The position numbers were made by a program, and so were the translations under genes. From Zygnema circumcarinatum SAG 698-1b (Eukaryota > Plantae > Zygnematophyceae), in the NCBI GenBank assembly GCA_037447605.1, contig CM074815.1, positions 1,674,001-1,738,000 on the forward strand: DNA of 64,000 nucleotides, written 5' to 3'. Every line of letters begins with the position of its first letter. Position 1 is the stretch's first letter. The notes beneath the pieces were generated by a model. The model was not told the origin of the DNA. It was given only the letters and a program-made list of their open reading frames with translations, and ran no database searches. Of the stretch, positions 2,442 through 57,336 are shown piece by piece.

Positions 2442-3128
2442 AGATTGATCCAGCGCGGGAATTTGTTGACCATCGCTGCTACTTCCAGTGGCGGGCACGT
2501 GTCCTCCGCAGGGCTCGGCCGACAATTTTTGGCAGGACCAACGGACGGCCGCCGCCTACTAGTTTCCCTTGCCGTCCAGCAGGAACTTTTTACATTGACC
2601 GTAGTTTCTGGGCAGCTTGGTCATCACGTATGTCGCCTCTCCCCGTCTCCGGCTTCCAGTCCCGCTCCAACCATGCGCCTAAGTCCGCCCTCGACGCGCC
2701 ACGTGGCATCTTTTTGGCCGTTACTGCTGCCCAAAAAACGTTTTTCTGCCCGCAATCGCCAGCCGCTTCGTATTTTACAGTTGTCGTTTTCGTCCGACGG
2801 ACAGGACGGATTATTCAGCCAATGGCGTGCTCCGCGAGTGCCGGCTCGAACGTGCCACCAACGGTCCTCATTGGCCCGTTGGCCGAGCTCTGATTGGCCA
2901 CCGACACGGAGCGGTCCCTTCGTCCTTTGCGAGCGGTACTCGAGGCGTCGGCCAATGGGACGCTCCGGAGAAACGTGTTGAAAGAACGTGGCTGCTCACC
3001 ATTGGCCGGATTCCAGCCCCCATTTGCGAGGGGAGGCGAAGCGGACGAGGCGAGCCCCGCCCTTGAAGGCCGGGCCGCCCCCAATTGGCAGCTCCCGGGA
3101 CCGCCATTGCAGGGCCGCCAGCGGCCGA

Positions 3129-3158
3129 CCCTAACCCTAACGCTGATCCTAACCCTAA
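3129..3158 (+). promoter_or_regulatory. Telo-box-like (CCCTAA)n in the 5' leader of the coiled-coil gene
   Basis: ccctaaccctaa..cctaaccctaa lies upstream of the first ATG (3184); the ORF track start at 3085 is a TTG. Confidence 0.4.
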
Positions 3159-3183
3159 TCCTGCAGCGGTTCAGACGAGCAGC

Positions 3184-5073
3184 ATGCGGGACGGAGGTCA
3201 TGGGAGGGAGCTCATGGGGGAGAGAGAGGATGAGGAGGAGGAAGACGACGAGGAGGAGGAGATAGAGATGCCGCAGGGCTGCACCATGGGAATGCGCCGC
3301 CCGCGCGTCCGGCCCTTCGGATCCGCATGCATGGGTCCCGCTGCTGCCGCTATGGGCAGGGGGAGCAAGCAGGGAGCCTATGCTCGCTTCCGTCATGCGG
3401 CCGACAGGTGCCTGCTCCCCCTCCCGCTCTTTCTCGATCTCTCCCTTTCCTTCTCTCTTCCCCTCTCCCCGTCGTGTGTCTTGCAAGAATCTGTTTTTTT
3501 TATCACTGACGCGATCTGGAGTTCACCCTGCAGCCTGGCGAAGTTGAAGGAGGAGAGCGAGAAGGAGACGGCGGATCTGAAAGAGCGGCTGCGCGGAGCA
3601 GAGGAGGTGGCGGAAAAGGAGAGGCGGCGCGCAGATACGGCGGAAGGAAAGCAGCGGCAGCTGGAGGACCACCTCGCTCTGCAGAGGAGGGAGCTCACGC
3701 GCTTGCTGTTGGAGAGGAAGGCGGAAAGGAGGGAGCTTAGAGCGGCGAGACAAGCCGAGTCGGAGAGGGTAAAGAAGGAGGGTGAAAAAGGGAGAGGCGC
3801 TTTGAAAGGGACAGGGGACAATGGGAAGGGGGAGGGAAAAGAAAGTGTGCAGGGATTTGATGCTGTGCAGAAAAGTGGAGAGAAGGAAGAGAAAAAAGAG
3901 GGAGGGGGAGGTGCGAAAGGCCTCCCTCCCCTTGTGGTAGGGAGGGGGGTGAGTAACTCAACTGGTGCTGGGAAGGAGCTCCAAGGAGCTCAATTGAAAA
4001 TTGAGAACCTTGTTCGGGAGGTAGCGGAGAAAGAAGCGGTTATGAAAGAGATGAAGAGAGAGCTGGAGAGGTGGAGGGAAGGGGCGGTTGGAAAAGAGGC
4101 TGAAAAAGGGTCGGAAGCGGAGGCACAGGGAGTCCCCGGCAATGTAGCAAAAGCGAAAGTGGACGTGGAGGAAGCAGTTTCAGCCAAGAATTCTCCTGCG
4201 GAAAGCGCAGCTCAGATGGAGAAGATAGCAGGCATGGCGGAGGAGATTGGGAGGCTTCGATCGCAGGTGGTAACGAAGGAGGATGCCGTCACACGCGTGG
4301 CCGAAAAGAACAGGGAACTGACTCGAGTGTTGAACAAAACTGAGGAGCATAGAAAGGAGCTGGAACGGCAGCTCAAGCGGATGAAGGACGACATTGCTCG
4401 GTTGGTGGATGATCTTGTTCAACTTGCCAAGGGTGAGAGACCTCTCACAGATCTCGACCTTCCCGCAGCCTCTCCAACCTCACCGGGAGTTGTGGGATAC
4501 CGCCAGAAGCTGACAGGTATCGTGTTGAAGCTGAGGGAGGAATTGAAGGCACTTGGTGAGGAGAAGGAGGGGGAGTTGCGGCAGTTAGGTATAGTTCTGC
4601 AAAGCAAGGAGGCGGCTATTTCATGGCTGGTGAAGGAGGTAGATGGGCTGAAGGAGTCTTTGGGACAGAGGGAGAGAGCGAAGGAGGAGGAAGCTGGTGG
4701 GGTGGCAGCCATGGCTGAGAAGGTAGCGGAAGCGACAAGGCTGAGAGATGAGGCAGTGAAGAAAAGGGATGCACTCGAAGGGGAGCTTCGAGCCGCGAGG
4801 AGTGCGCTCTCTGAGGAGATTAGAAGGAAGAGTGAGAGTGAGAGAGAGGGAGAGGGTGTGGGTGTGGTGAGGGCGAAGCAAACGTGCAACGAATGCAGCA
4901 GAAAGAGAGAGAAGCCTAAACCGAAAGCTGACGACGTGGGAGAGTTTGGCGCGGGAGTGAAAGCATCTCGAGGCGAAGTGGAGGGACTGGGAACAGAGCT
5001 GACCAAGGCTGAAACGGAGCTGGAAAATGGGGCCAAGAAGAAAGGGCTGCTAAGTGATATTGGAAACTTCTGA
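3184..5073 (+). CDS. Uncharacterised acidic/basic coiled-coil protein (about 587 aa)
   Basis: Long ORF with an E/K/R-rich heptad-like sequence (LAKLKEESEKETADLKERLRGAEE...). First ATG is 3184 (alternative 3214). Probable 126-nt in-frame GT-AG intron 3408-3533 (CT tract, CACTGAC branch site, CCCTGCAG acceptor). No family recognised. Confidence 0.75.
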   Translation: MRDGGHGRELMGEREDEEEEDDEEEEIEMPQGCTMGMRRPRVRPFGSACMGPAAAAMGRGSKQGAYARFRHAADRCLLPLPLFLDLSLSFSLPLSPSCVLQESVFFITDAIWSSPCSLAKLKEESEKETADLKERLRGAEEVAEKERRRADTAEGKQRQLEDHLALQRRELTRLLLERKAERRELRAARQAESERVKKEGEKGRGALKGTGDNGKGEGKESVQGFDAVQKSGEKEEKKEGGGGAKGLPPLVVGRGVSNSTGAGKELQGAQLKIENLVREVAEKEAVMKEMKRELERWREGAVGKEAEKGSEAEAQGVPGNVAKAKVDVEEAVSAKNSPAESAAQMEKIAGMAEEIGRLRSQVVTKEDAVTRVAEKNRELTRVLNKTEEHRKELERQLKRMKDDIARLVDDLVQLAKGERPLTDLDLPAASPTSPGVVGYRQKLTGIVLKLREELKALGEEKEGELRQLGIVLQSKEAAISWLVKEVDGLKESLGQRERAKEEEAGGVAAMAEKVAEATRLRDEAVKKRDALEGELRAARSALSEEIRRKSESEREGEGVGVVRAKQTCNECSRKREKPKPKADDVGEFGAGVKASRGEVEGLGTELTKAETELENGAKKKGLLSDIGNF

Positions 5074-23789: not shown

Positions 23790-24065
23790 AAGGAAGGTGT
23801 GGTGAGAGGACTTGAGAGGGAAAGAGGAGGGAGAACATGAGAGGGAAAAAGAGTGGGAGGGAGAGCACGAGAGGGAGGGCAAGGAGGAAAAAGGGAAAGG
23901 GAGAGCACGAAGGAGAAGGAAAGAGCAAGAGAGGGAGGGAGGGGGAGAGCGAGAGGGAGAAAGTGGAGGGAGAGTGAGAGGAGAACAAGACGGGAGAAGT
24001 AGCGGAGGGAAAGCAAGAGAGGGAGGGCGAGCACGAGTGGGAGGGGCAGAGAGCAAGAGCAAAGC
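23790..24065. repeat. Purine-rich (GA/GGA) low-complexity tract
   Basis: About 275 bp almost entirely G/A on the + strand. Confidence 0.85.
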
Positions 24066-24480
24066 ATAGTGCAGTCTCAGTCAGACCCTGCAGCCATGAC
24101 ACAGCATAACCTTCGGCCACGTGAGCCTGCCACTTCTGGCCAGCCACTTCTTCAGCACTCTGTCAAAGCACGCACTCGAATGCCATAAAAAGTACTCAAA
24201 CAACATCCAGTTGAGTCAAGAGCGACAAGCTCCAATGGAATTATATAGGAGTTATTTGCTTAACAAGGCAGAACACAGTAATTCCTGAAACAACCACCAA
24301 ATAAGCAAACACAGATGCGAGCCCTCCGGCCCAGCAAGAACAACAGCACCTGCTGCATTTGCAGTAAGCTACAAGACCTAGGAGACGTAAACGACTAATT
24401 CAGCATATCCTAATATATCACAAGTCCTCCGCAAAGCCAAGGCCCGCGCAAGACTCACCATCCTTTACTCGTCTTCTCTC

Positions 24481-26253
24481 CTATACACTGATCCCTGCCA
24501 ATGGTGCCGGTGTCGGAGCAGGCTGCGACTCGTTTCCAAAAGCTGACATGTCCGGAAACCTAACCGAAGCTGCTCCTCCCCCTTCTACTGGTGCAGCTGA
24601 GCCCGCGGGATTGTAGTCAGCCCACCTACTCTTGAACCCTGTTTGGCCAGGTTGCGCCTGTTCTCCCTCCCCTTTCCATTCCGCAAAGTCTACCCCGCCT
24701 CTCGGACTCAAAAGGTCTGCTTCCTCGTCTGCAAGCTCATCATAATTCGTAATGCGAGGGTCTAAGCCCGCCATCTCCGCAGCTCTCTCATGTGAACTTC
24801 CAGAAGCTATGGCTTTCTTGTACACATCCATGGATCGTCTCCGCGAACTCACTTGGGGGTTTTCACGCACGTAGAGATCTCCTTCCTGCGGAATCCTTTC
24901 ATCTGCATCCGAGTCTTCATCATCGTCATCCATCTGCGCGAAGTCGATCAGCTGCCCTCCTCCCCACGCAATAGCCCTTGCTTCCTGCTTTGAAGTAGTC
25001 ACAGCTCGGGGCGCTTCCTCCCCTCTTTCAGCAGGACTGGGCTGGAACAAAGGAGACTGTCCAGGGGATCCCCCTCCATCCTTCCCTGCGACAACGGAAG
25101 CCCATGCTGCAGCACCCATGGCTGCCTCTGCGGCTGCTGCCGTGACAGGAGCGGAATGAGTGCGCCTCACAGCTGCAAGCACTGCTTCGTCCGGCTTCTT
25201 CTCTATCTCCAGACTTAGTCTCCGGCTCTTCCTCCTCTTTGCCCGGAACTGGTTCGGCGACCCCTCTGAGGTTTCCTTCAGCAGAGATTCTGCCGCAGCG
25301 ACAGAGGAGGGCGTATCATGCTCGTCATCATCAGCGTGCTCGAAGGCATCAGTCTGAGCGAAGTCGATGACTGTCGCAGAATGTATGGCTGGGGAAGTGA
25401 CAGCCGACTCTCCGCCGCCTTTCCCAATAGAAGAGGAAGGGGATGAGCCCGAATATCGTGGCAAGGGGGGACTTCCCGTGCCCTCCTCAGCCAGCAGCCG
25501 CTGCCTCTCCATGTCTTCCAAAACTACTCTCCGCGCATGGTCGCCCTGTATGGGAGCAGACGACGAGCGTCTCAGCGCTGCAAGTAGAACAAGATCTGGC
25601 GCCTTCTCCACTTCCAAGCTCAGCCTCCTCCCTCGCCTCCGTGCCCTCCAAGGGCCAGGCACCTCCTCCTCGGCTTCATCATCACTTCCCTCCCCAGCTG
25701 CAGCCCCCCTTCCTAGCCGGGACTTCCCTGCTACTGCAGCTCCCTCCACCATAGCCTGCACATTACCTTCTTTCCCGTCAGTACCTTTCGCTGCAGAGCT
25801 CATCACCACAGTCTCCGACATCAGGTCTGCGTCTGCTTCTGCATCCCACGCTGCCTGCTCTGCAGCAGAAGGAGAGTCTCCCCATGCTGAAGGAGAGTCT
25901 GCCTTGGAGCTAGGTTTCTTCTGCACTTCCAGACTCAGCCTTCTGCTCACGCGCCTCCTCACTCTCCATCCTCCGCTCTCGTCGTCATCATCGTCATCAT
26001 CATCATCCGCTTCAGGGGGGCGAGTCGCTGCCTTCGCTGGTTCTCGGCCCGCCTGCACAATCTCCACGGGTTTCGGCTTCGTGATCATCGTCGTCAGATC
26101 GTGCTTCTCCTCCGGCCGTGCAGCCGCATCCGGCTTTGAAGCTTCTACTACCGCCATGGCCTGCGGAGGAGGGGCGCGCACAGGAGCAGCTGCGGGCCTC
26201 CTTGCAGGAGGAGGATCATCTTTCACTGCAGGCGCCGAGCCACAATTCCCCAT
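24481..26253 (-). CDS. Uncharacterised intronless, N-myristoylated, disordered protein with three RRLSLE repeats (590 aa)
   Basis: 1773-nt ORF with ATG context GCC ATG G; N-terminus MGNCGS; RRLSLE at 25944-25927, 25629-25612, 25224-25207; acidic tracts; no family recognised. Confidence 0.85.
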   Translation of the reverse strand: MGNCGSAPAVKDDPPPARRPAAAPVRAPPPQAMAVVEASKPDAAARPEEKHDLTTMITKPKPVEIVQAGREPAKAATRPPEADDDDDDDDDESGGWRVRRRVSRRLSLEVQKKPSSKADSPSAWGDSPSAAEQAAWDAEADADLMSETVVMSSAAKGTDGKEGNVQAMVEGAAVAGKSRLGRGAAAGEGSDDEAEEEVPGPWRARRRGRRLSLEVEKAPDLVLLAALRRSSSAPIQGDHARRVVLEDMERQRLLAEEGTGSPPLPRYSGSSPSSSIGKGGGESAVTSPAIHSATVIDFAQTDAFEHADDDEHDTPSSVAAAESLLKETSEGSPNQFRAKRRKSRRLSLEIEKKPDEAVLAAVRRTHSAPVTAAAAEAAMGAAAWASVVAGKDGGGSPGQSPLFQPSPAERGEEAPRAVTTSKQEARAIAWGGGQLIDFAQMDDDDEDSDADERIPQEGDLYVRENPQVSSRRRSMDVYKKAIASGSSHERAAEMAGLDPRITNYDELADEEADLLSPRGGVDFAEWKGEGEQAQPGQTGFKSRWADYNPAGSAAPVEGGGAASVRFPDMSAFGNESQPAPTPAPLAGISV

Positions 26254-26652
26254 GGCTTTGAAACCGCGCGCAAAGGCGAGGACAGAACTCCCTCAACAAG
26301 AAAACCAATCTGTAAGATTATCCGCTTCCCTGCCTACAGACGACAGCGATCTGCAATAGCTCTACTCTACCAAGCACTCCCGCATACATCTGCTGCTGCA
26401 GCCGCAGAGTTAGGTCTGTTCTTAGCAGGCTCCTGTTCAACACTCCCCTATCCCTTTCCCTCTGTCTCCCCCTATCCCTCCCTCCTCTCTCCCTCTCCCT
26501 CTCCCTCTCTCCGCCCCTCTTTCCCCATCGCCCTATCTCCGACGGAACGCCGAGGGAGAGAGATATCGGCCGTCCTGAAGGCGGTCGGTCCTGCGGGAGG
26601 GCAGAGCCGGGCGGGCCGACGGACGGACGCGGGGGAGGCGGATCCGGGGGCG

Positions 26653-26930
26653 GTACCCGGAAAATTCGGGTTTGGGGGGCGACGGGGAGGGGGGGGGGAG
26701 GGGGGTCGGGTTCGAACTCCCAAAAAAAATTGCGCATACGGTACAAAATCCGGAATTTTGCCCGTTGAAAAATATCGCCCTTGCGAAAATCGGTCCCTCT
26801 TTATGGAAGGCGCCCAATATTCGATCGATCCCAAACCGGGCCGAAGGAAAATTTTGGGGCGGGCAGCCTGGCACCATGACGTCAACTCGTACGGCCTGCA
26901 CCCGTCCGCCACGTGCGGAGCCGTACGGAC
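26653..26930. promoter_or_regulatory. Divergent promoter island (orphan / fructosamine kinase) with GTAC sites, G-box and G-tract
   Basis: GTAC at 26653, 26741, 26889, 26923 (CCGTACGGAC 26921); CACGTG near 26910; G-runs 26674-26710. Confidence 0.5.
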
Positions 26931-46200: not shown

Positions 46201-49200
46201 AAGGAACTTTTGCAGACAGAGCACTGAGATAAAGGGAATAAAAGAACGATAAATATTCTTAGAATTCTCTTGGCTAGGCAAATAGCAATAGAGACCTTCC
46301 GCCCGAACAAAAGCACCATTCGACAGCTAACCAAACTAAACATCTATAGAATAGAACAATCCAAAGTAGAAGCTGGACATGGGGACACCTGAGATTCAAG
46401 AAATCCTTAGTCAGCAGAGTGCAACATAACCCTAAAAGATACTTTCTTCATTGAACAATACCAGATATTACTACTGCTTTGCTAAAGTACAAGGCACAAT
46501 GCAAAAGTACAAAATCTACAATCCAATTGTGTTCAATGTAAAAGCAGTGGGGTCGTTAGATAGTGCCAACTACAGGAGTAACCGGACTGTACCTGCTCTC
46601 CACTGCCTTCAAGAAAAGGCATTAAGACAGTAATGGCTCCTCCTAGACGCATGCGATCCCTCACATCTTTCGCCCAAATTGGAGATGCAAGGCCAAGCAA
46701 AGCTCGCAATAGATGCTCTTGAATGATTGATCCTGCCAAGTTAAGAAGCGACAACAACTGGTAGATCGTTTCCTCTGACCCTAAAATAGTCCCTTCCGTC
46801 TCCAACGGGATGCCCGTCTGTATTCCCGCCAAAGCCAAATTTGCCAGCGTTGCTGCTGCTCCCTCTTTGAGAGACATCACGACTGATGTGACAGAGAATA
46901 GCAGCTGCAGGAGAGGAGGAATGATGCCTGCGCTTATGAGAGCAGCGCGATTAGCCGGCAAGGAGGAAAGGTTTTGGAGAGCGCCCAAAGCAGCTGCCTT
47001 CGCCTCAAGTTTGCCGGCAGCGATCATAGCAACAAGGGGAGGAATTGCATCTTCTTGGGCTAAAGCAGCTTTGCTTTGATCGGTCAATGCCATGCGGGAG
47101 AGGGCACTAGCCATCACAATGCGGGCCATTTCTGAGCCTGCATTTGCAACACCCTACCCGACCCTAATGTTGGTCTTTGAAAGGAGTGATAGAAGAAGAA
47201 GGGAATTAGCTTGCTGCGTGAGAGTGAGTAAGCCCACGTTCGCTCGCCATGCTGCCCTCTGTACATAGTACTTAAATACCCTGAACCCAAAAGCAGCTAG
47301 ACTGAAGCTAATGTCCTGCTTTTTATTAAAGACGGGCTTATGAAGGCTGTACCGGAGATAAGACGCTGTGCCAACGGCTTAAAATGATTGGCCTCTGCCA
47401 TCTGAACCACATTCTGGTCATTGCTTGCGAGCTGCTCCAACACAGCCCGTGCATCTCTTGCCGCATTTGCGTTGTCAGAGTTGAGCATAGTGACCAGAAG
47501 CAGAATGCTGCCCTGAGCCCTCCCAATCTCCTCACAGACTGCAGGGCTCTTAGAAAGCTCCAATAGCAGGGCCACTCCCTGCCTGCTCTCTCCCACATCC
47601 CGGGCAAGTGACCGTACTGCCAAAGGAATTGCGCCTGCCTCTGCAATTGCCTCCTGCATACCATCTCCACTCCAAGCATACACCTTTCAAGTAATGCCTA
47701 CAGAAATATGCCTGCAGCGCACTAACAATAGAGATCCCTGGTTGCAAATTTGAGCTTGGCTGCTGTTGTCCCACTTATGTATGACTTCGGTAGAGCAAGA
47801 AGGGGCACACTAGCATAGTCATTTGACGACTTTAACATATGAGGTGGGGTGCGAAGAAAGAAGCATGAACTGAACCACAGCCTCGTACGACTTCCTTTCG
47901 TCTCAGCAAAGGAGAAAAGTAAAAAATGGGAAGATACTAAAACAGCTTTCAAAGCAAGGGGAAGTCCATGAACGGCTAAAACAAGCAGTCTTTGCAGCTA
48001 GAGGGAGAAAAAATGATGCCCAGGAGAAGTGTCCCAAAGAGATTTAGTGCACCTTGTTTTCGTCGTTATTTGTAGCCAGCTGAGCAAGTGCAGCAAGTGT
48101 CTTTCGTCGCAAATTTCGACTAGAAGATTTGAGTACTTCCACTATGTCAGGAATCAAACCCTCTGCATTAATCCAAAAGCGGTTGAGTGAGCGCTCATCA
48201 CATAGCTTAAAAATTTCCAACAGTCCTGCTTCCACCTCCTCCTCTTTGCCTGACGCAAGCTTTGGTCGAGTGGCTTGAATAGCAATCACAGTGTTACGCT
48301 TCCGCCATTCGTCTATAGCTTCTCTCAGTGCTGTATTCGGCCTTAACTCGAACGATTGCAGCTCGTTTTTAGTCACTGGACAAATTCGGTTTCCAGCTAA
48401 AACATCCGCACCGCCCACACCAGAGCAGAGTCAGCAAGCTTCCAGTCAAAATTCCACTTTTGTGAAGAACATATATATATGTGCAGATAGTAGTTTGCTA
48501 AGCTGTTGCGAGCATTCTCCACAGAAAGAAACTTTTGGTAGAACAAGAAAGGCCGGTATTCTGTCCCATGATGCAGCTTGCCCTTCAGGTAAACTGTGGG
48601 AAAATCTACACCCTAATGTGCTTTGGCTGTTTAACAGCATTTCGTTTACAGTGATGCCAGACAAACAGCTCTAAACCACAGAATTGAGCTTGTCACTGAA
48701 ACTAGCCGGCAAGTGGCACCAGTTGGCAATTTTGTCTGCATACCGTCTCTACATGCTTTTCCCGATAAGCGGCTTTTAGGTGGAAGAGCTGCGAGCTACC
48801 TGCAAACCACTCCTGAATGGCGGAGCGTTCAAAACACTCCCCGGTTTCCAGCAGAACAGGATCCTCCATCACTTTGTTCGTGAGTGGGCAAATGTATGCC
48901 TGAGGGGGAAGAAGGGCAGTGCCACTGGCCACACTTTCACGCCTCCGTTGATACTCCCGATCCTTCTCTTTGACAGCGGCGCCTCGTGCATCTCCTTCGG
49001 CGGTTTCCAGGAGTGAAATGACATATTCCAAGTACTGCACCGCATCTGTTTCACAACCTGGCTGGACTGCATCCCGAGCTTTTCGCAGCTCTGCAATGTC
49101 AGGTTGGAGTTCTGATGCATCTAGGGATGCCCCTGAGAGCTGCGAAAGCTGTTGAAGAAGACTATTGCTTGCTGCGGCGTCATCCCGCTGCTCACGCATG

Positions 49201-49785
49201 ACCTGCTCCAGTCTGTGTACCATAGCGGCCTCTGCAGGGTCAGGGCCGAGCTCTGCCTGCTGCATCTGTAACCCTAACTGCGCTGCATTAAGGACCCCCT
49301 GAGCAGTGCTCAGCTGCTGCCCCAAAGCATGCGCCACATCCTCTATCTGCTGACCCACGCTTCGTCCAGTCACCACCAGAACCAGTCTGCTTTTGCTGCT
49401 CGCATCATTCACCAGCTGCAACGCTCTTTTCAGCTGTGCCCCGGCAACAACCCTCCAACTACTACATGAGCCATCGAAAACCATCGGCGTGCCTCCACTA
49501 CTCTACTTTGCAATCCAAATTATCAGTTTCCCATCTCAAGTCAGGGTTTTCTGAGTACAAGAAAAAAAAAATCAGCCTCACCTGCACATGAAGGCCCTCC
49601 AGCGTCGCCAGATGCTCGTCGCCCTCCTGATACGCCATCAGCTGTACTATGGGCTGCATGGCATCGAGATATTGCGCAAGCTGCTGGAAGCTCTCCCTCG
49701 CTCCCTTCATTCTCCTTGCAGCGCTGCTCATCTCGAAAGCTAATGCTGCCAGCTGGCCTGCAAGTAGGGCACTTGCAGCAGCCAT
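43263..49785 (-). CDS. PUB44: U-box/ARM-repeat E3 ubiquitin ligase, PUB43/44 (SAUL1)-like (about 997 aa, 8 exons)
   Basis: Exons 49785-49582, 49433-48800, 48396-48053, 47653-47353, 47137-46593, 45578-45354, 44272-44154, 43884-43263. U-box PPQAYICPLTNKVMEDPV..FERSAIQEWF..CPVT..LRPNTALREAIDEW; ARM repeats; VVQMAEANHFKPL; C-terminus LLQNQSSYF. Exact orthology to PUB44 not tested. Confidence 0.93.
44448..45336. repeat. 52-bp tandem minisatellite (about 17 copies) in intron 6 of the U-box gene
   Basis: Unit gacccactttccattcgacccaacttctcatacgagatgataagagatgact starts at 44448, 44500, 44552, 44604, 44656, 44708 (33-bp truncated), 44741, 44793 (+26-bp partial), then 44871 to 45287 at 52-bp steps. 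Confidence 0.98.
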
Positions 49786-52534: not shown

Positions 52535-55500
52535 TCAACGTCGGTTGGGACGCGGCTTATAGCGAAACTCTGCCAACAGAGCGATATGATCGGAGGACCA
52601 TTCTGGTGAAGGTAGGGCTGTGTCCTTCCGAAGACTTTCCTCATCCAGTAGTTCCAAAAGCGCTTCAACAGACAGAGAATCAGCTGTAGCCACAGAAAAC
52701 GAGAAGTGGAAGTGGCAGATGAATAGAGACTCACAAAAGAAGTTCCAACTTGATTATAAGATGAGCAATACAATCCCATTCGAGCAATATGGCAACACGT
52801 GTGTAGACATGTGCGGGACTGCAACGCAATCTATCTGCCAAAATAACACAAGGTTGATCCACGGAGGGAGGAAACCAGATGTACCTGTATAGAATATGTA
52901 ATCCAAAGTTCCAAGAAAATCCCGAGTGCAATTGGTAAACAGGGGTTCGCTGCTGGTGGCATCCATACGCCGCCTTTGACGCTCTGCAGCGGGCCCTGAG
53001 GCTGAATTCAAGCGGTTCAGAGAAGCATAGGCACTAACCTGCGCATGCAACACCACCACAAGAAAACTCCTTTACTTTCCCAAATTTCATGCCCCGTTAA
53101 TATCTTCAGGCATTGATAGTAACGTGATGTTTTCCTTGCTATCCATCAAACATATGATTGCCCGAAGGTGAAAGGACAACAGGTCAATGTATTTTCACTT
53201 AAAATTCTTTCAAAAGGGTATCAAAGGATATCAGTAGAGAACCTAATTCCGATTAAGGCATACGAAATGGATGCTTACTTCTCTTTATGGCATTTACCCT
53301 TCATTCCTTGAATGCATCCTCACAATTTCTGCCCTGTATGCTCTAGTTACATTTGAATACAGCGTACGTAAAATTCACCCCCCTCGCTGTATTCAGCGAC
53401 GGAAACTCAAAACAGTCGTTCATGTTAAGTAGAATACACCAAAAACACGAATCAAATGCCACCAAATCACGAGATTATGCTAATGAATTGGATTACCAGA
53501 ACATAAAGTGGAGGAGATGGAGGACCCACCAAGGGCAACTGATGGCAGAGCTTACTGAAGGGGCGTAGAATCCCCAACGGGTCAGTGGCCAACTCCGGGT
53601 GAGCCGGATCAACCCGTCCGGTCGCTAACAAGTTGTGCGGCGCACTGCAGCCCTCTAACTACACACCTTTAGAAAGAAAAATTTGGCAGTACAGGAAAAT
53701 CTCGAGACTATACTGGACATATCCAACACCGAGAGTTACATTCAAGCTGTCCACATAGGGAATTATGCATAGCTCCAAACTAGTCAGTGACTTTTTCAGA
53801 GAAGATGATCGGCCCCCACCAGCTCACCTGCCTGGCACACTGTTGAAATCTCCTGCAACAAGCATAGGAATATCGGCACTTGCGGCTATCTTCTCCAAAC
53901 CCTTCAACAGTGTGTGCACTTGCCAAAGCTTCACATCCTTCAGCTCTGTATTGGCGTGAATATGGGTATTAGCCTGCAGTTTGCCACCAGAAAACATGAG
54001 AGCCCAGAAAATATCTCAAAGGAACATACCTCACTGCTTTCTTTTATTCTGATTGTACAATGGGCGAAGTAATATCCGGGAACTCACTACACATAACAGC
54101 TGCCGTTTTCCATTCCCGTTGGGGTCCGGATCAGCTGCATCGCGTGCTTCCAGCACCACAATTAGTGCTACGTTGTCCTGTTGAGCAGAGCGAAGGTCAG
54201 TGTCAGCCACCATGGGGATAAAAAAGGGCATTTGGCAGTATTTCAGTTCACATTTTCATCATCCATCACTGCTTTAACCAGTGGCAATAGAAAAAACAAC
54301 AGGATTGAAGAATGGCACTCTCCGTTTTTCTGCTTCTCGCAGATAAGGAAGAAGTACTAATATAGCTGCTACTCCTATTTAGCTGGCTACTTCGTTGTCC
54401 TAGATACAAGCGTAACTCTCTGAGCACTTAACGAAGGAATGCACACATTGGTCAAGACTGTCAGATGGTGAACTCTTAAACTTGCACACAGGAAAGTGGC
54501 ATACCTTGAGCAGACGGTTAAGAGCTGCCTTCTTTGACGTGGCCGGCACAAGTGCCTCTGAGAGGGAAAGAGCTGCTTTGTTGAACTCCACCTGGTGGAG
54601 CAAAGCAGAGCTGTCCGCTACATTACTTTGCGAACAGATGATGTGGATGCGCAGAAAATAAATTAGAACGATAACTCTTAGTTTGAACTGTGAATGCCTC
54701 GACCAAGTTTACGCTTGAACGTAAATACATACCTCATACTTCTTCACCAAAGAAAAGCGATCCCGACGGAAGAATGTTGCACATCCATCAATGGCATAAG
54801 CAGTTCCCGTGTACACCTGGGAAAGACCGATCACATTTCACACAATGAGAAGACCGTGGTCGTGAACTTTGAACAAGTGGCGTACTTTCAGGAAGCACAC
54901 GCCAAAGAGTCAATGGACATGACTCAAGTAATTGATGATATCTTTGAGAGGAACACTCCCGATTGTATGTAAGCCGATGAACAGGCAGCATCTACTTGAA
55001 ACGAAATTATATGGGGTCCCATCATCCCATTAAATACCAACCTCTGCAGTCTTCTTCTTGTACACTGCAGCATATCCATGCTTCTCCAACTCTGGCGCAA
55101 AAAACTCCTCGAAGTGGTCACTTTGTACCTGTAGTGACCAGAATGCCATCATCAGTTCATTTCAATAGGCAAGCACTAATGACTACTCGTTAAGACTGCT
55201 TCGACTTTTCAGGTCATCTCTCCTACTCGTGTAATGGATACCACATTAAACACAGACCATAAACCTTAGTAAGGTCTCGCCTTTTTAAACCGAGCGAGAT
55301 TGTATGTTGTACGAAGTCAACAAATTCCGCAGAAGAAGAAACACGGAATGAACAAGGCTCATACTACGAAAAAATTGGCTATCAGCCACCAAATACTACA
55401 AATTAGAAAGGACAGTGAAGCCTAGAAATACAGGCATGTAGCATCTACATTGAGCAGTATGTACCTCTTGGAGGCATAATATATCTGCTCGATAGCCGAC

Positions 55501-57336
55501 CAACTCCCGCAACAGGTTTTGACGCCGATAGGCCCAAGAAAGCGCCCATGGTGGGCAGTAGGCATACATCTCACTTGTAGCATACAAGTCTGCCAGAACA
55601 TTATAGGACAGCACTGTAAAAGTCCCTCCAGAAGCTCTGTCTGCTTCTACAGCATTGCCGTCTGAAGGTCCAAAAGGAATAAGTCGTCTTGGAGTAGGAG
55701 AAGGAGCTGGAATGACCCGAGAAGTAAGTAAAGTGCTAGGTGGTGCGACTGCATTCCCTGTAGAGGAGTCTATTGGGGTACATTCCAGCTTCAAAACATG
55801 GCCCACGTCATCTGCAGTTGGGGTATATGTCTTGCCCCGCCCAACCTCATACCAGGATTCCCCTATGGACTGTGGCTGGCCATCTGCTCCATTAGGCGCC
55901 CTATTGGCAATATACCCAGACCCGCCGTTGCTCAGACCACTGAGAGAATTGGCCCCGCTCCCCTGCAACAGACCTCCTGTAGTGCTTCCTGCTCCACTAC
56001 CAAATCTACCAAAGAGTTCGTCATCCTCCCCTCCAACTTCCCTCCCACCATTTGCCATGCCGCGTGTATGCATAGCCTTGTGATGTCGCCATGCAGCAGC
56101 AAAGCATTGTGGAGAGCAGTGGAAGCTTTTGGCAGGTGGCAGCTTTGCCTTGACACAACCCAGACACTGCAAAGTGGCTGGCTCGGTGGCATGAACACTG
56201 CAGACAGCAGCCCGCTTATCATTCTGGACTCGAAACCTGTACATCCAACAGTAGCAATCAGCAGCTTGCAACGTATTCAAGTGAAAGACAGACTTATAAA
56301 TAAAGCCAACTTTCATAAACTGTCGTAGGCTTAAACCTAATGAGACTAGCATTACACTACTACTACTAGCAGTACTCCCAAGATATCCCCTGGCAGCTGT
56401 TACTTCCAGTAATATTCCACATACCAAATAACATCTAAAGGCATGACAAGGGGCATGAGCGTCTAAATCAACGATGACAGAACAGAGCTGGCCTAAAAAC
56501 CCTAAAAACAGTAAAAAAAAGACATAAGTCACAAGATGAATGAAAGAAATGAGCTCCTCTCCAGCCTTCCTATCAGACATGCAGGAACCTAGGCATCTAC
56601 GAATTGTTTATTCTCACCTAGCGATTCGATACTTAACCTGATCAACTTTAGGCCTAATGCAGAATGATGAACCGAGAAGCTTACACACAATAAAGCACGA
56701 GCAAACCTCACTTTCTGCTATTATACCCAGCTTCTGGTATACTTTGCAAAGTCAGCCTCAACTATTTCCAAGGCCGAGTAAGTGAATTGGAAATCACAGG
56801 CACATACAGTTTCAGAATCAAGAGACAGCTCGCCTTTGGACTCAAACAATCTCACTAAAGTTCCTCAGGAAGTGTAATAAAAGTCACCAACAGAATCGTC
56901 AAAGGGCAATCGACCTTGTTCCAGCTTCGAATAACACAGTCTTCACTCCCTCAAGCAAAACCCAAAGCTGACTCGTTTCTGACAATCAAATACACTCAAA
57001 GACATGCCATTACGGCACACAATGCCATAGGCATAAATTACTGCTGCAGCATAATCCTGAGTCGAGCTTCACACAAGTTGCAAGGTTATCATTGGCACCA
57101 ACGAGCAGTGCCACATAGAGAACCTCGCATGCAATTGTCATACAAAGCCGCTTTTAGGGTTTGAATGAGGGACTGCACCATCGGCAGCGTAGGTAGTATC
57201 CATCTATAGGATTGGTCTCTGGGATGTCATCAGTCGTGATGGTCGAGTCCGGCTTGCGCAGGAGCACATAGGGGGACAGCTCGCAGCCGGCGATGGGGAT
57301 GTCCGACGGCAGATGCACACGCAGCACGCCGAGCAT
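52535..57336 (-). CDS. CCR4: CCR4 deadenylase (plant CCR4a/b type, EEP nuclease; about 613 aa, 10 exons)
   Basis: Exons 57336-57179, 56236-55465, 55128-55042, 54816-54733, 54591-54505, 54177-54088, 53973-53828, 53644-53530, 53038-52885, 52683-52535. MLGVLRVHLPSDIPIAGCELSPYV, SYNVLADLYA, ILCLQEVQSDHF, AGDFNS, TLDYIFY, WSSDHIALLAEF. Confidence 0.96.

Follow-up and report, generated by a model that had tools for sequence, protein, structure and literature searches.

The DNA considered here is a stretch of 64,000 nucleotides (contig CM074815.1, positions 1,674,001 to 1,738,000), called the window below, and all coordinates are positions within it. At 24481-26253 (minus strand) lies an intronless open reading frame (ORF) which encodes, in one uninterrupted frame, a protein of 590 amino acids (aa); by the conservation described below, the gene is real and under selection, chiefly on its motifs, and its product belongs to a tiny, narrowly distributed, orphan-like family which is undescribed. 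The ATG has a good start context, AGCCATGG (AGCC ATG G), and an in-frame stop lies 14 codons 5′ of it; the termini being matched in relatives, the ORF is complete at both ends. Alanine makes up 16% of the protein, its net charge is −29, and in a charge scan acidic and basic blocks alternate along the chain. The features of the coding sequence (CDS) are the following (AF2, AlphaFold2; pLDDT, predicted local distance difference test; dN/dS, ratio of nonsynonymous to synonymous substitution rates).

24481..26253, minus strand: single-exon CDS, stop at 24481-24483; N- and C-termini co-linear in the relatives P0001-P0003
26230..26253, minus strand: N-terminus MGNCGSAP (residues 1-8), signature of N-myristoylation (Gly2, Ser6) and S-acylation (Cys4); kept in 8 of 8 N-termini
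25978..26013, minus strand: acidic tract 1, EADDDDDDDDDE; acidity kept among relatives, tract length variable
25912..25968, minus strand: module 1, WRVRRRVSRRLSLEVQKKP, residues 96-114, with W, a polybasic stretch, RRVS and RRLSLE, then KKP; seen in conservation, dN/dS and repeat homology
25819..25866, minus strand: short helix AAEQAAWDAEADADLM (AF2 helix 130-145, pLDDT ~75); E132, A134, W136, A140 and D141 invariant
25663..25692, minus strand: acidic tract 2, from the charge scan
25552..25650, minus strand: module 2, residues 202-234, with W, polybasic stretch, RRLSLE (RRLSLEVEKAPD), KAPD, helix LVLLAALRR and SSSAP (RSxSxP); conserved, helix at 221-231
25357..25374, minus strand: TVIDFA motif copy 1, followed by acidic tract 3 (25315-25350); V295, D297, F298 and A299 invariant
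25147..25248, minus strand: module 3, residues 336-369, with F, polybasic stretch, RRKS and RRLSLE (RRLSLEIEKKPD), KKPD, helix AVLAAVRR and THSAP (RxxSxP); aligns with module 2
25084..25143, minus strand: Ala-rich helix with AAMGxxxWAxV (helix 372-389); M379, G380, W384, A385 and V387 invariant; kept in contig L003
24898..24951, minus strand: LIDFA motif copy 2 and acidic tract 4; IDFA links units 3 and 4
24799..24849, minus strand: module 4 (degenerate), SSRRRSMDVYKKAIASG, residues 469-485, an RRxS site opening an amphipathic helix; kept in 3 of 4 full-length proteins
24676..24693, minus strand: VDFAEW (DFxxW motif); in 4 of 4 full-length proteins
24484..24501, minus strand: C-terminus LAGISV-COOH with penultimate Ser, candidate mode-III 14-3-3 motif; ISV, ISI, VSV among the family, ITV in L003

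Modules and Predicted Structure

An earlier note, made from the sequence alone, had quoted an MGNCGS start and three modules, each after an acidic tract, plus a degenerate fourth. The start and all of the quoted module strings are present where it had placed them, and the charge scan finds an acidic block immediately before each of modules 1-3; for module 4, the block DDDDEDSDADE lies a short distance ahead. The polybasic patches carry a charge of +7 to +9 per module, and modules 2 and 3, unlike module 1, are extended by a segment of the LLAA-x-RR-x-x-SAP type. When sub-alignments were compared with hhalign, units 1-3 proved to be homologous repeats (97-98% probability), units 2 and 3 aligning over 57 columns (98%). 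The homology of unit 4 to units 1-3 was not significant (10%, E 0.003), and it shares [VL]IDFA with unit 3; its weaker site RRRSMDVYKK is present and conserved in most full-length members.

None of 20000 composition-preserving shuffles of the protein contained three RRLSLE (mean 0.0002), and none contained four [RK][RK]xS[LIVM][DE] (mean 0.02). The three RRLSLE copies of the window use different synonymous codons, and apart from brief GAT/GAC-type matches within the acidic tracts the CDS has no repeats at the DNA level. The modules must accordingly be old and maintained as protein sequence, and the lack of such repeats rules out a recent tandem duplication as their origin.

The protein is predicted to be mostly disordered: with an alignment of four sequences, AlphaFold2 gave a mean pLDDT of 45.5, and 420 of the 590 residues fell below 50. 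Short helices are predicted at residues 130-145, 221-231 (LVLLAALRRSS), 239-256, 356-365 (EAVLAAVRRT), 372-389 and 466-483, the last of these, in module 4, being the most confident prediction (pLDDT 82-87). Conserved elements which the earlier note had not mentioned are the two [VL]IDFA motifs, DFxxW, the AAMGxxxWAxV helix and the C-terminal [IV]-[ST]-[VI]. Several known motifs were compared by eye: the Rubisco-binding motif W[RK]xx[LIVA] is excluded as position 5 is Arg; PP1 RVxF, PP2A-B56 LxxIxE, calcineurin LxVP and the 1-5-10 or 1-14 spacing of calmodulin targets do not fit; and for IDFA and DFxxW the fit to clathrin box or gamma-ear motifs is imperfect.

Relatives, Selection, and Distribution

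A word search recovered three full-length relatives with 39-46% identity. A HMMER profile built from these and the window's protein, run exhaustively on 1.84 billion cluster representatives, matched six proteins in total.

P0001: 562 aa, full-length, Logan assembly
P0002: 480 aa, full-length, from an ENA metagenome
P0003: 566 aa, full-length, a Trinity transcript from EukProt
P0004 and P0005: N-terminal fragments, from the profile search
P0006: 269-aa piece with two modules, on JGI contig L003

The samples are SRR9302961, ERZ27272769, ERZ28593328, SRR24581284, SRR31677087 and JGI 3300050363. Neither a named protein nor a land-plant proteome is among the six matches, and land plants are well covered in the same collections, as a neighbouring gene of the CCR4 type matched hundreds of land-plant proteins. 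The first large exon of this deadenylase gene (55396-56580, minus strand) encodes a zf-C6H2 (MYND-like) finger, and an Exo_endo_phos domain begins within it; the best matches of the gene are from Mesotaenium (67%) and liverworts (64%), none of them near-identical, and judging by this gene, the window belongs to a streptophyte genome.

Other searches were negative within their scope. A word search limited to module 2 recovered P0003 alone, and two scans of JGI metagenome contigs, one with the full and one with the module alignment, gave pattern matches and no confirmed relative, which is uninformative as patterns and query were short. The window and the contigs of the relatives share no synteny besides the gene itself. 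No family of Pfam-A was hit by hmmscan at E≤1, and the precomputed Pfam entry of P0001-P0003 is empty ("-"); sequence searches of the PDB with the full-length and the module profile returned chance matches alone (E>0.6), and among ESM Atlas look-alikes there was no usable match. In a full-text literature search the motifs were not found described in any alga or plant, the one occurrence of RRLSLE being a chance one in a Drosophila PKG antigen.

The conserved positions cluster in the motifs: column identity in windows of 15 residues is 0.85-0.93 within the modules and within the AAMGxxxWAxV helix, versus 0.25-0.5 in the linkers, and is 88-92% in module 1. The overall dN/dS (Nei-Gojobori) between closer relatives is ~0.4, and in module 1 it is 0 between P0002 and P0005 and 0.07-0.09 for P0004 versus P0005 and P0002 versus P0004. 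At least one orthologue is transcribed, P0003 being a transcript itself. The statement of the earlier note that the protein is undescribed is thus borne out (no Pfam match, six unnamed relatives), and the module is conserved in relatives, the opposite of which the note had listed as refuting its reading.

The partial members show some variation. The frames of P0004 and P0005 end soon after module 1 while their contigs continue (L004 654-1112, L005 463-768), and in L004 a donor-like GTTGAG lies where the frame stops, which points to a possible intron in these members, in contrast to the intronless gene of the window. In P0006 (L003 3-946) the frame shifts directly behind the RR in module 3; the other frame resumes with HSAPITAAAAKAAVGEAAWAA, comprising HSAP and the Trp helix, and ends in EITV-stop. 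This divergent member therefore keeps a 14-3-3-like motif, the Trp helix and a penultimate hydroxyl residue, and has no module 4.

Long low-complexity purine/pyrimidine tracts border the gene on either side (26440-26560 and 23800-24070) and generate spurious ORFs on both strands; the upstream tract is GA-rich, with a run of the GGGAGAGAGGGAGAG type and a poly-C/CT run at ~26680-26730, and the downstream tract is CT-rich. These tracts may be GAGA-type promoter or terminator elements. Elsewhere in the window there is a pair of ORFs at 48702-49484 (minus strand) and 3085-5073 (plus strand), one of which holds the start of a U-box domain; the 662-aa ORF of this pair has weak coiled-coil-type Pfam matches, GAS and HAP1_N, both below the cut-off.

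Predicted Lipid Anchor, Kinase-Type Sites, and 14-3-3-Type Motifs

All eight known N-termini of the family read MG[NC][CG]xSAP, and each member has a single Cys, which is invariably residue 3 or 4, within this motif. Gly2, Ser6 or a small residue there, and Cys at position 3 or 4 are the features by which dually acylated proteins are recognized, and the MARCKS-type myristoylation consensus MGxxxS is present as MGNCGS in the window's protein and as MG[NC][CG]xS in the eight N-termini. A sole Cys within the acylation motif is what would be expected if it serves S-acylation beside a myristoylated Gly2. Gly2 is thus probably N-myristoylated and Cys4 S-acylated, as the earlier note had read from the first residues, and the protein would be attached by these lipids to a membrane on its cytosolic side, with the plasma membrane the most plausible candidate.

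RRLS-L-E conforms to the R-R-x-S-hydrophobic consensus that is classic for basophilic kinases, and the form RRLSL[ED] is invariant in every copy. Ser occupies the acceptor position (P0) in all 15 copies of the module listed for relatives, which comprise 13 distinct sequences, as well as in the three of the window; since it is never replaced by Ala or Gly, as in pseudosubstrates, a true acceptor is favoured over a pseudosubstrate of the PKI or RI type. Modules 2 and 3 each add a putative mode-I 14-3-3 motif, RRSSSAP (228-234) and RRTHSAP (363-369), 135 residues apart and both kept in P0001-P0003. They match the definition RSx(pS)xP / RxxSxP (PMC4495292), and the literature search with RRSSSAP led to a site in FAM122B: the octapeptide LRRSSSAP of module 2 is identical to the 14-3-3 site of this human protein, where pSer25 is experimentally validated for 14-3-3 binding and the 14-3-3 dimer also uses a second, forskolin/PKA-dependent site (PMC4495292). 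The kinase-type and 14-3-3-type motifs which the earlier note had named are therefore conserved in relatives. At the other end, three full-length proteins, that of the window among them, terminate in [IV]S[VI], and the fourth, P0003, in GADK; with L003 the pattern is [IV]-[ST]-[VI]-COOH, so that the penultimate Ser/Thr, judged from the terminal residues, may add a candidate mode-III 14-3-3 site (motif as defined in PMC4495292).

Comparison with Known Systems

MARCKS combines a myristoyl group with a polybasic effector domain whose electrostatic contact with the membrane is sensitive to phosphorylation. The window's protein resembles it in the N-myristoylation signal, in its Ala-rich, acidic, unstructured chain and in the aromatic, polybasic segments with serines in kinase-target context. 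It differs in having three to four such modules instead of one effector domain, a palmitoylatable Cys, attached 14-3-3 motifs, an acidic tract beside each basic patch and sites of the RRxS-hydrophobic (AGC/PKA) type, where MARCKS has the PKC-type FSFKKSFK; nor is there a match to the Pfam MARCKS profile, which covers MH2 and the effector domain, at E≤1. The likeness to FAM122A/B/C (PABIR) concerns the 14-3-3 "lynchpin" site, [LI]RR[SV][NS]SAPLI, which corresponds to LRRSSSAPI here and AIRRTSSAPL in P0003, along with disorder and the use of a second basophilic site by the 14-3-3 dimer in FAM122; however, it is confined to ~9 residues, and FAM122 is neither lipidated nor repetitive. FAM122 proteins are inhibitors of PP2A-B55, and no counterpart of their inhibitor helices was found here.

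In plants, hinge-1 of nitrate reductase (SLKKSVpSTPF) becomes a 14-3-3 site upon phosphorylation by CDPK/SnRK1; it shares with the RRxxSAP motifs a hydrophobic residue at −5, basic residues at −4/−3, Ser at −2, the phosphoserine and Pro at +2, but is a single site in the linker of a folded enzyme, versus two copies in a non-enzymatic repeat protein. PCaP1/DREPP is likewise reported to be an N-myristoylated, acidic, disordered, plasma-membrane-associated signalling adaptor of the green lineage; its one basic region is N-terminal, its body is Glu-rich and binds Ca2+, and it has no RRLSLE or RRxxSAP repeats, and the window's protein does not match the DREPP family of Pfam. Dibasic RRxS-hydrophobic sites also characterize the inhibitor site of PKA RII, PKI and the R domain of CFTR, the last being disordered and regulated by PKA at multiple sites; there is no homology to these, and neither a cyclic-nucleotide-binding domain nor a channel context, and P0 is always Ser here, unlike in PKI and RI. 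Overall, the family appears to be a variant of lipid-anchored, phospho-regulated, disordered scaffolds, assembled from short linear motifs whose kinds are known, and is not homologous to MARCKS, PCaP1 or FAM122.

A Proposed Membrane-Tethered Scaffold and its Alternatives

The favoured reading, quite possible if somewhat short of probable, is that the protein is a dually acylated, membrane-tethered, MARCKS-like disordered scaffold, in which basophilic kinases act on the polybasic patches and RRxxSAP recruits 14-3-3. Three homologous modules and the degenerate fourth would hang from the lipid anchor, each consisting of an acidic tract, an aromatic residue and a polybasic patch ending in the acceptor RRLS*LE (AGC/PKA/PKG/S6K-type); in modules 2 and 3 a short predicted helix is followed by hydrophobic-RR-x-x-S*-A-P, with the geometry of CDPK/SnRK1/AGC targets, which would create a mode-1 dock for 14-3-3. 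When unphosphorylated, the patches would rest on acidic lipids or a partner; phosphorylation within them would loosen this contact, and phosphorylation of both RRxxSAP sites would allow a 14-3-3 dimer to clamp the chain, which may offer two or possibly three docking sites. The outcome would be a multivalent phospho-switch scaffold that stays membrane-bound. Lipidation, membrane identity, the kinases, 14-3-3 and lipid binding and the biological role are all inferred here from motifs.

Several points weigh against this scaffold reading. Its functional side is drawn entirely from short linear motifs, and two RxxSxP were reached in 1051 of the 20000 shuffles (~5%); their number being common by chance, this motif rests on conservation, and in P0006 module 2 reads RRTSMES, with SxP lost, so this 14-3-3 site is not universal. 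IDFA, DFxxW, AAEQAAWDAEAD and AAMGxxxWAxV are conserved yet lie outside its account. With myristate plus palmitate, the protein is unlikely to leave the membrane in the manner of MARCKS; as such anchoring is stable, any switch would be local, on individual patches, and of the electrostatic membrane switch proposed in the earlier note the release of the whole protein is accordingly weakened. Finally, among streptophytes PKA and the cyclic AMP (cAMP) enzyme CAPE occur only in those with motile sperm, and Zygnematophyceae are reported to lack CAPE. The kinase need not be PKA; should the alga be a zygnematophyte, it probably has no PKA module, so that PKA, which the earlier note had named, may not exist in it.

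A spurious ORF in GC-rich, low-complexity DNA without gene function would account for the lack of a Pfam domain and for the long ORF of 330 aa on the opposite strand (25367-26359, plus strand), but is effectively refuted already by the start and stop common to relatives, the transcript among them, dN/dS far under 1 and identical motifs spelled with synonymous codon variation. The antisense ORF itself is Ser/Ala/Pro-rich and most likely a by-product of composition, the minus-strand frame accounting for the conservation. An adaptor between membrane and cytoskeleton, or for Ca2+/calmodulin, after the manner of PCaP1 and MARCKS is unlikely. Here the acidic tracts would serve Ca2+ binding, and calmodulin, phosphoinositides, actin or microtubules would be partners of the W/F-polybasic patches, with the serines in a secondary role and 14-3-3 not central; the poly-Asp tracts fit, and N-acylation, acidity, disorder and aromatic plus basic patches are the design of MARCKS and, as reported, of PCaP1. 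Yet poly-Asp length is poorly conserved (P0001 has EDE alone before module 1), in contrast to the invariant RRLSLE and RRxxSAP, and neither MARCKS nor DREPP is matched in Pfam.

Still less likely is a multivalent regulator or anchor of kinases, in which RRLSLE and RRVS would act as substrate-like inhibitor sequences of the RII type that hold catalytic subunits of AGC kinases, cyclic-nucleotide-dependent or other, at the membrane, the protein being a lipid-anchored kinase sponge or pseudosubstrate. R-R-x-S-hydrophobic is the geometry of the inhibitor site in regulatory subunits of PKA, there are three to four such sites per chain, and homologues of PKA-R and PKA-C exist in streptophytes with motile sperm; true pseudosubstrates, however, carry Ala or Gly where every copy here has Ser, no cyclic-nucleotide-binding, docking or other domain was found in the Pfam-A scan, and the nearest match of the neighbouring gene is in Mesotaenium, a point to be set beside the reported absence of CAPE. 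Where the earlier note had offered scaffold or pseudosubstrate/inhibitor side by side, the inhibitor is thus weakened. It is improbable, too, that RRLSLE[VI]xKxP serves to dock a partner other than a kinase (e.g., a phosphatase, a trafficking adaptor or a degron reader) and resembles a kinase consensus by coincidence. The conserved positions, L at −1, L at +1, E/D at +2, V/I at +3, K at +5 and P at +7, do extend wider than kinases usually need, but RVxF, LxxIxE, PxIxIT/LxVP and the clathrin box are all unfit by eye, and the core of a D-box, RxxL, is present only trivially.

Significance

Streptophyte algae are a reference for the assembly of plant signalling, and most of their conserved disordered proteins are unannotated. 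The generality of the present case is limited, with six matches in 1.84 billion proteins, none of them from a land plant; on the other hand, a single-exon gene with one Cys and five to six predicted regulatory serines makes a compact test case, and the family could show 14-3-3 and basophilic kinases acting on membrane-tethered disordered scaffolds outside animals. By analogy, it may indicate that a MARCKS-like design, thought to be animal, can arise independently. A further-reaching proposal, possible but doubtful, is that the family is a convergent streptophyte-algal counterpart of animal regulators of the MARCKS and FAM122 type, with two kinase inputs (RRLS*LE and RRxxS*AP) and cross-linked 14-3-3 dimers forming a switchable membrane hub or condensate; if this were true, it would take part in the control of a membrane process in a lineage near land plants.

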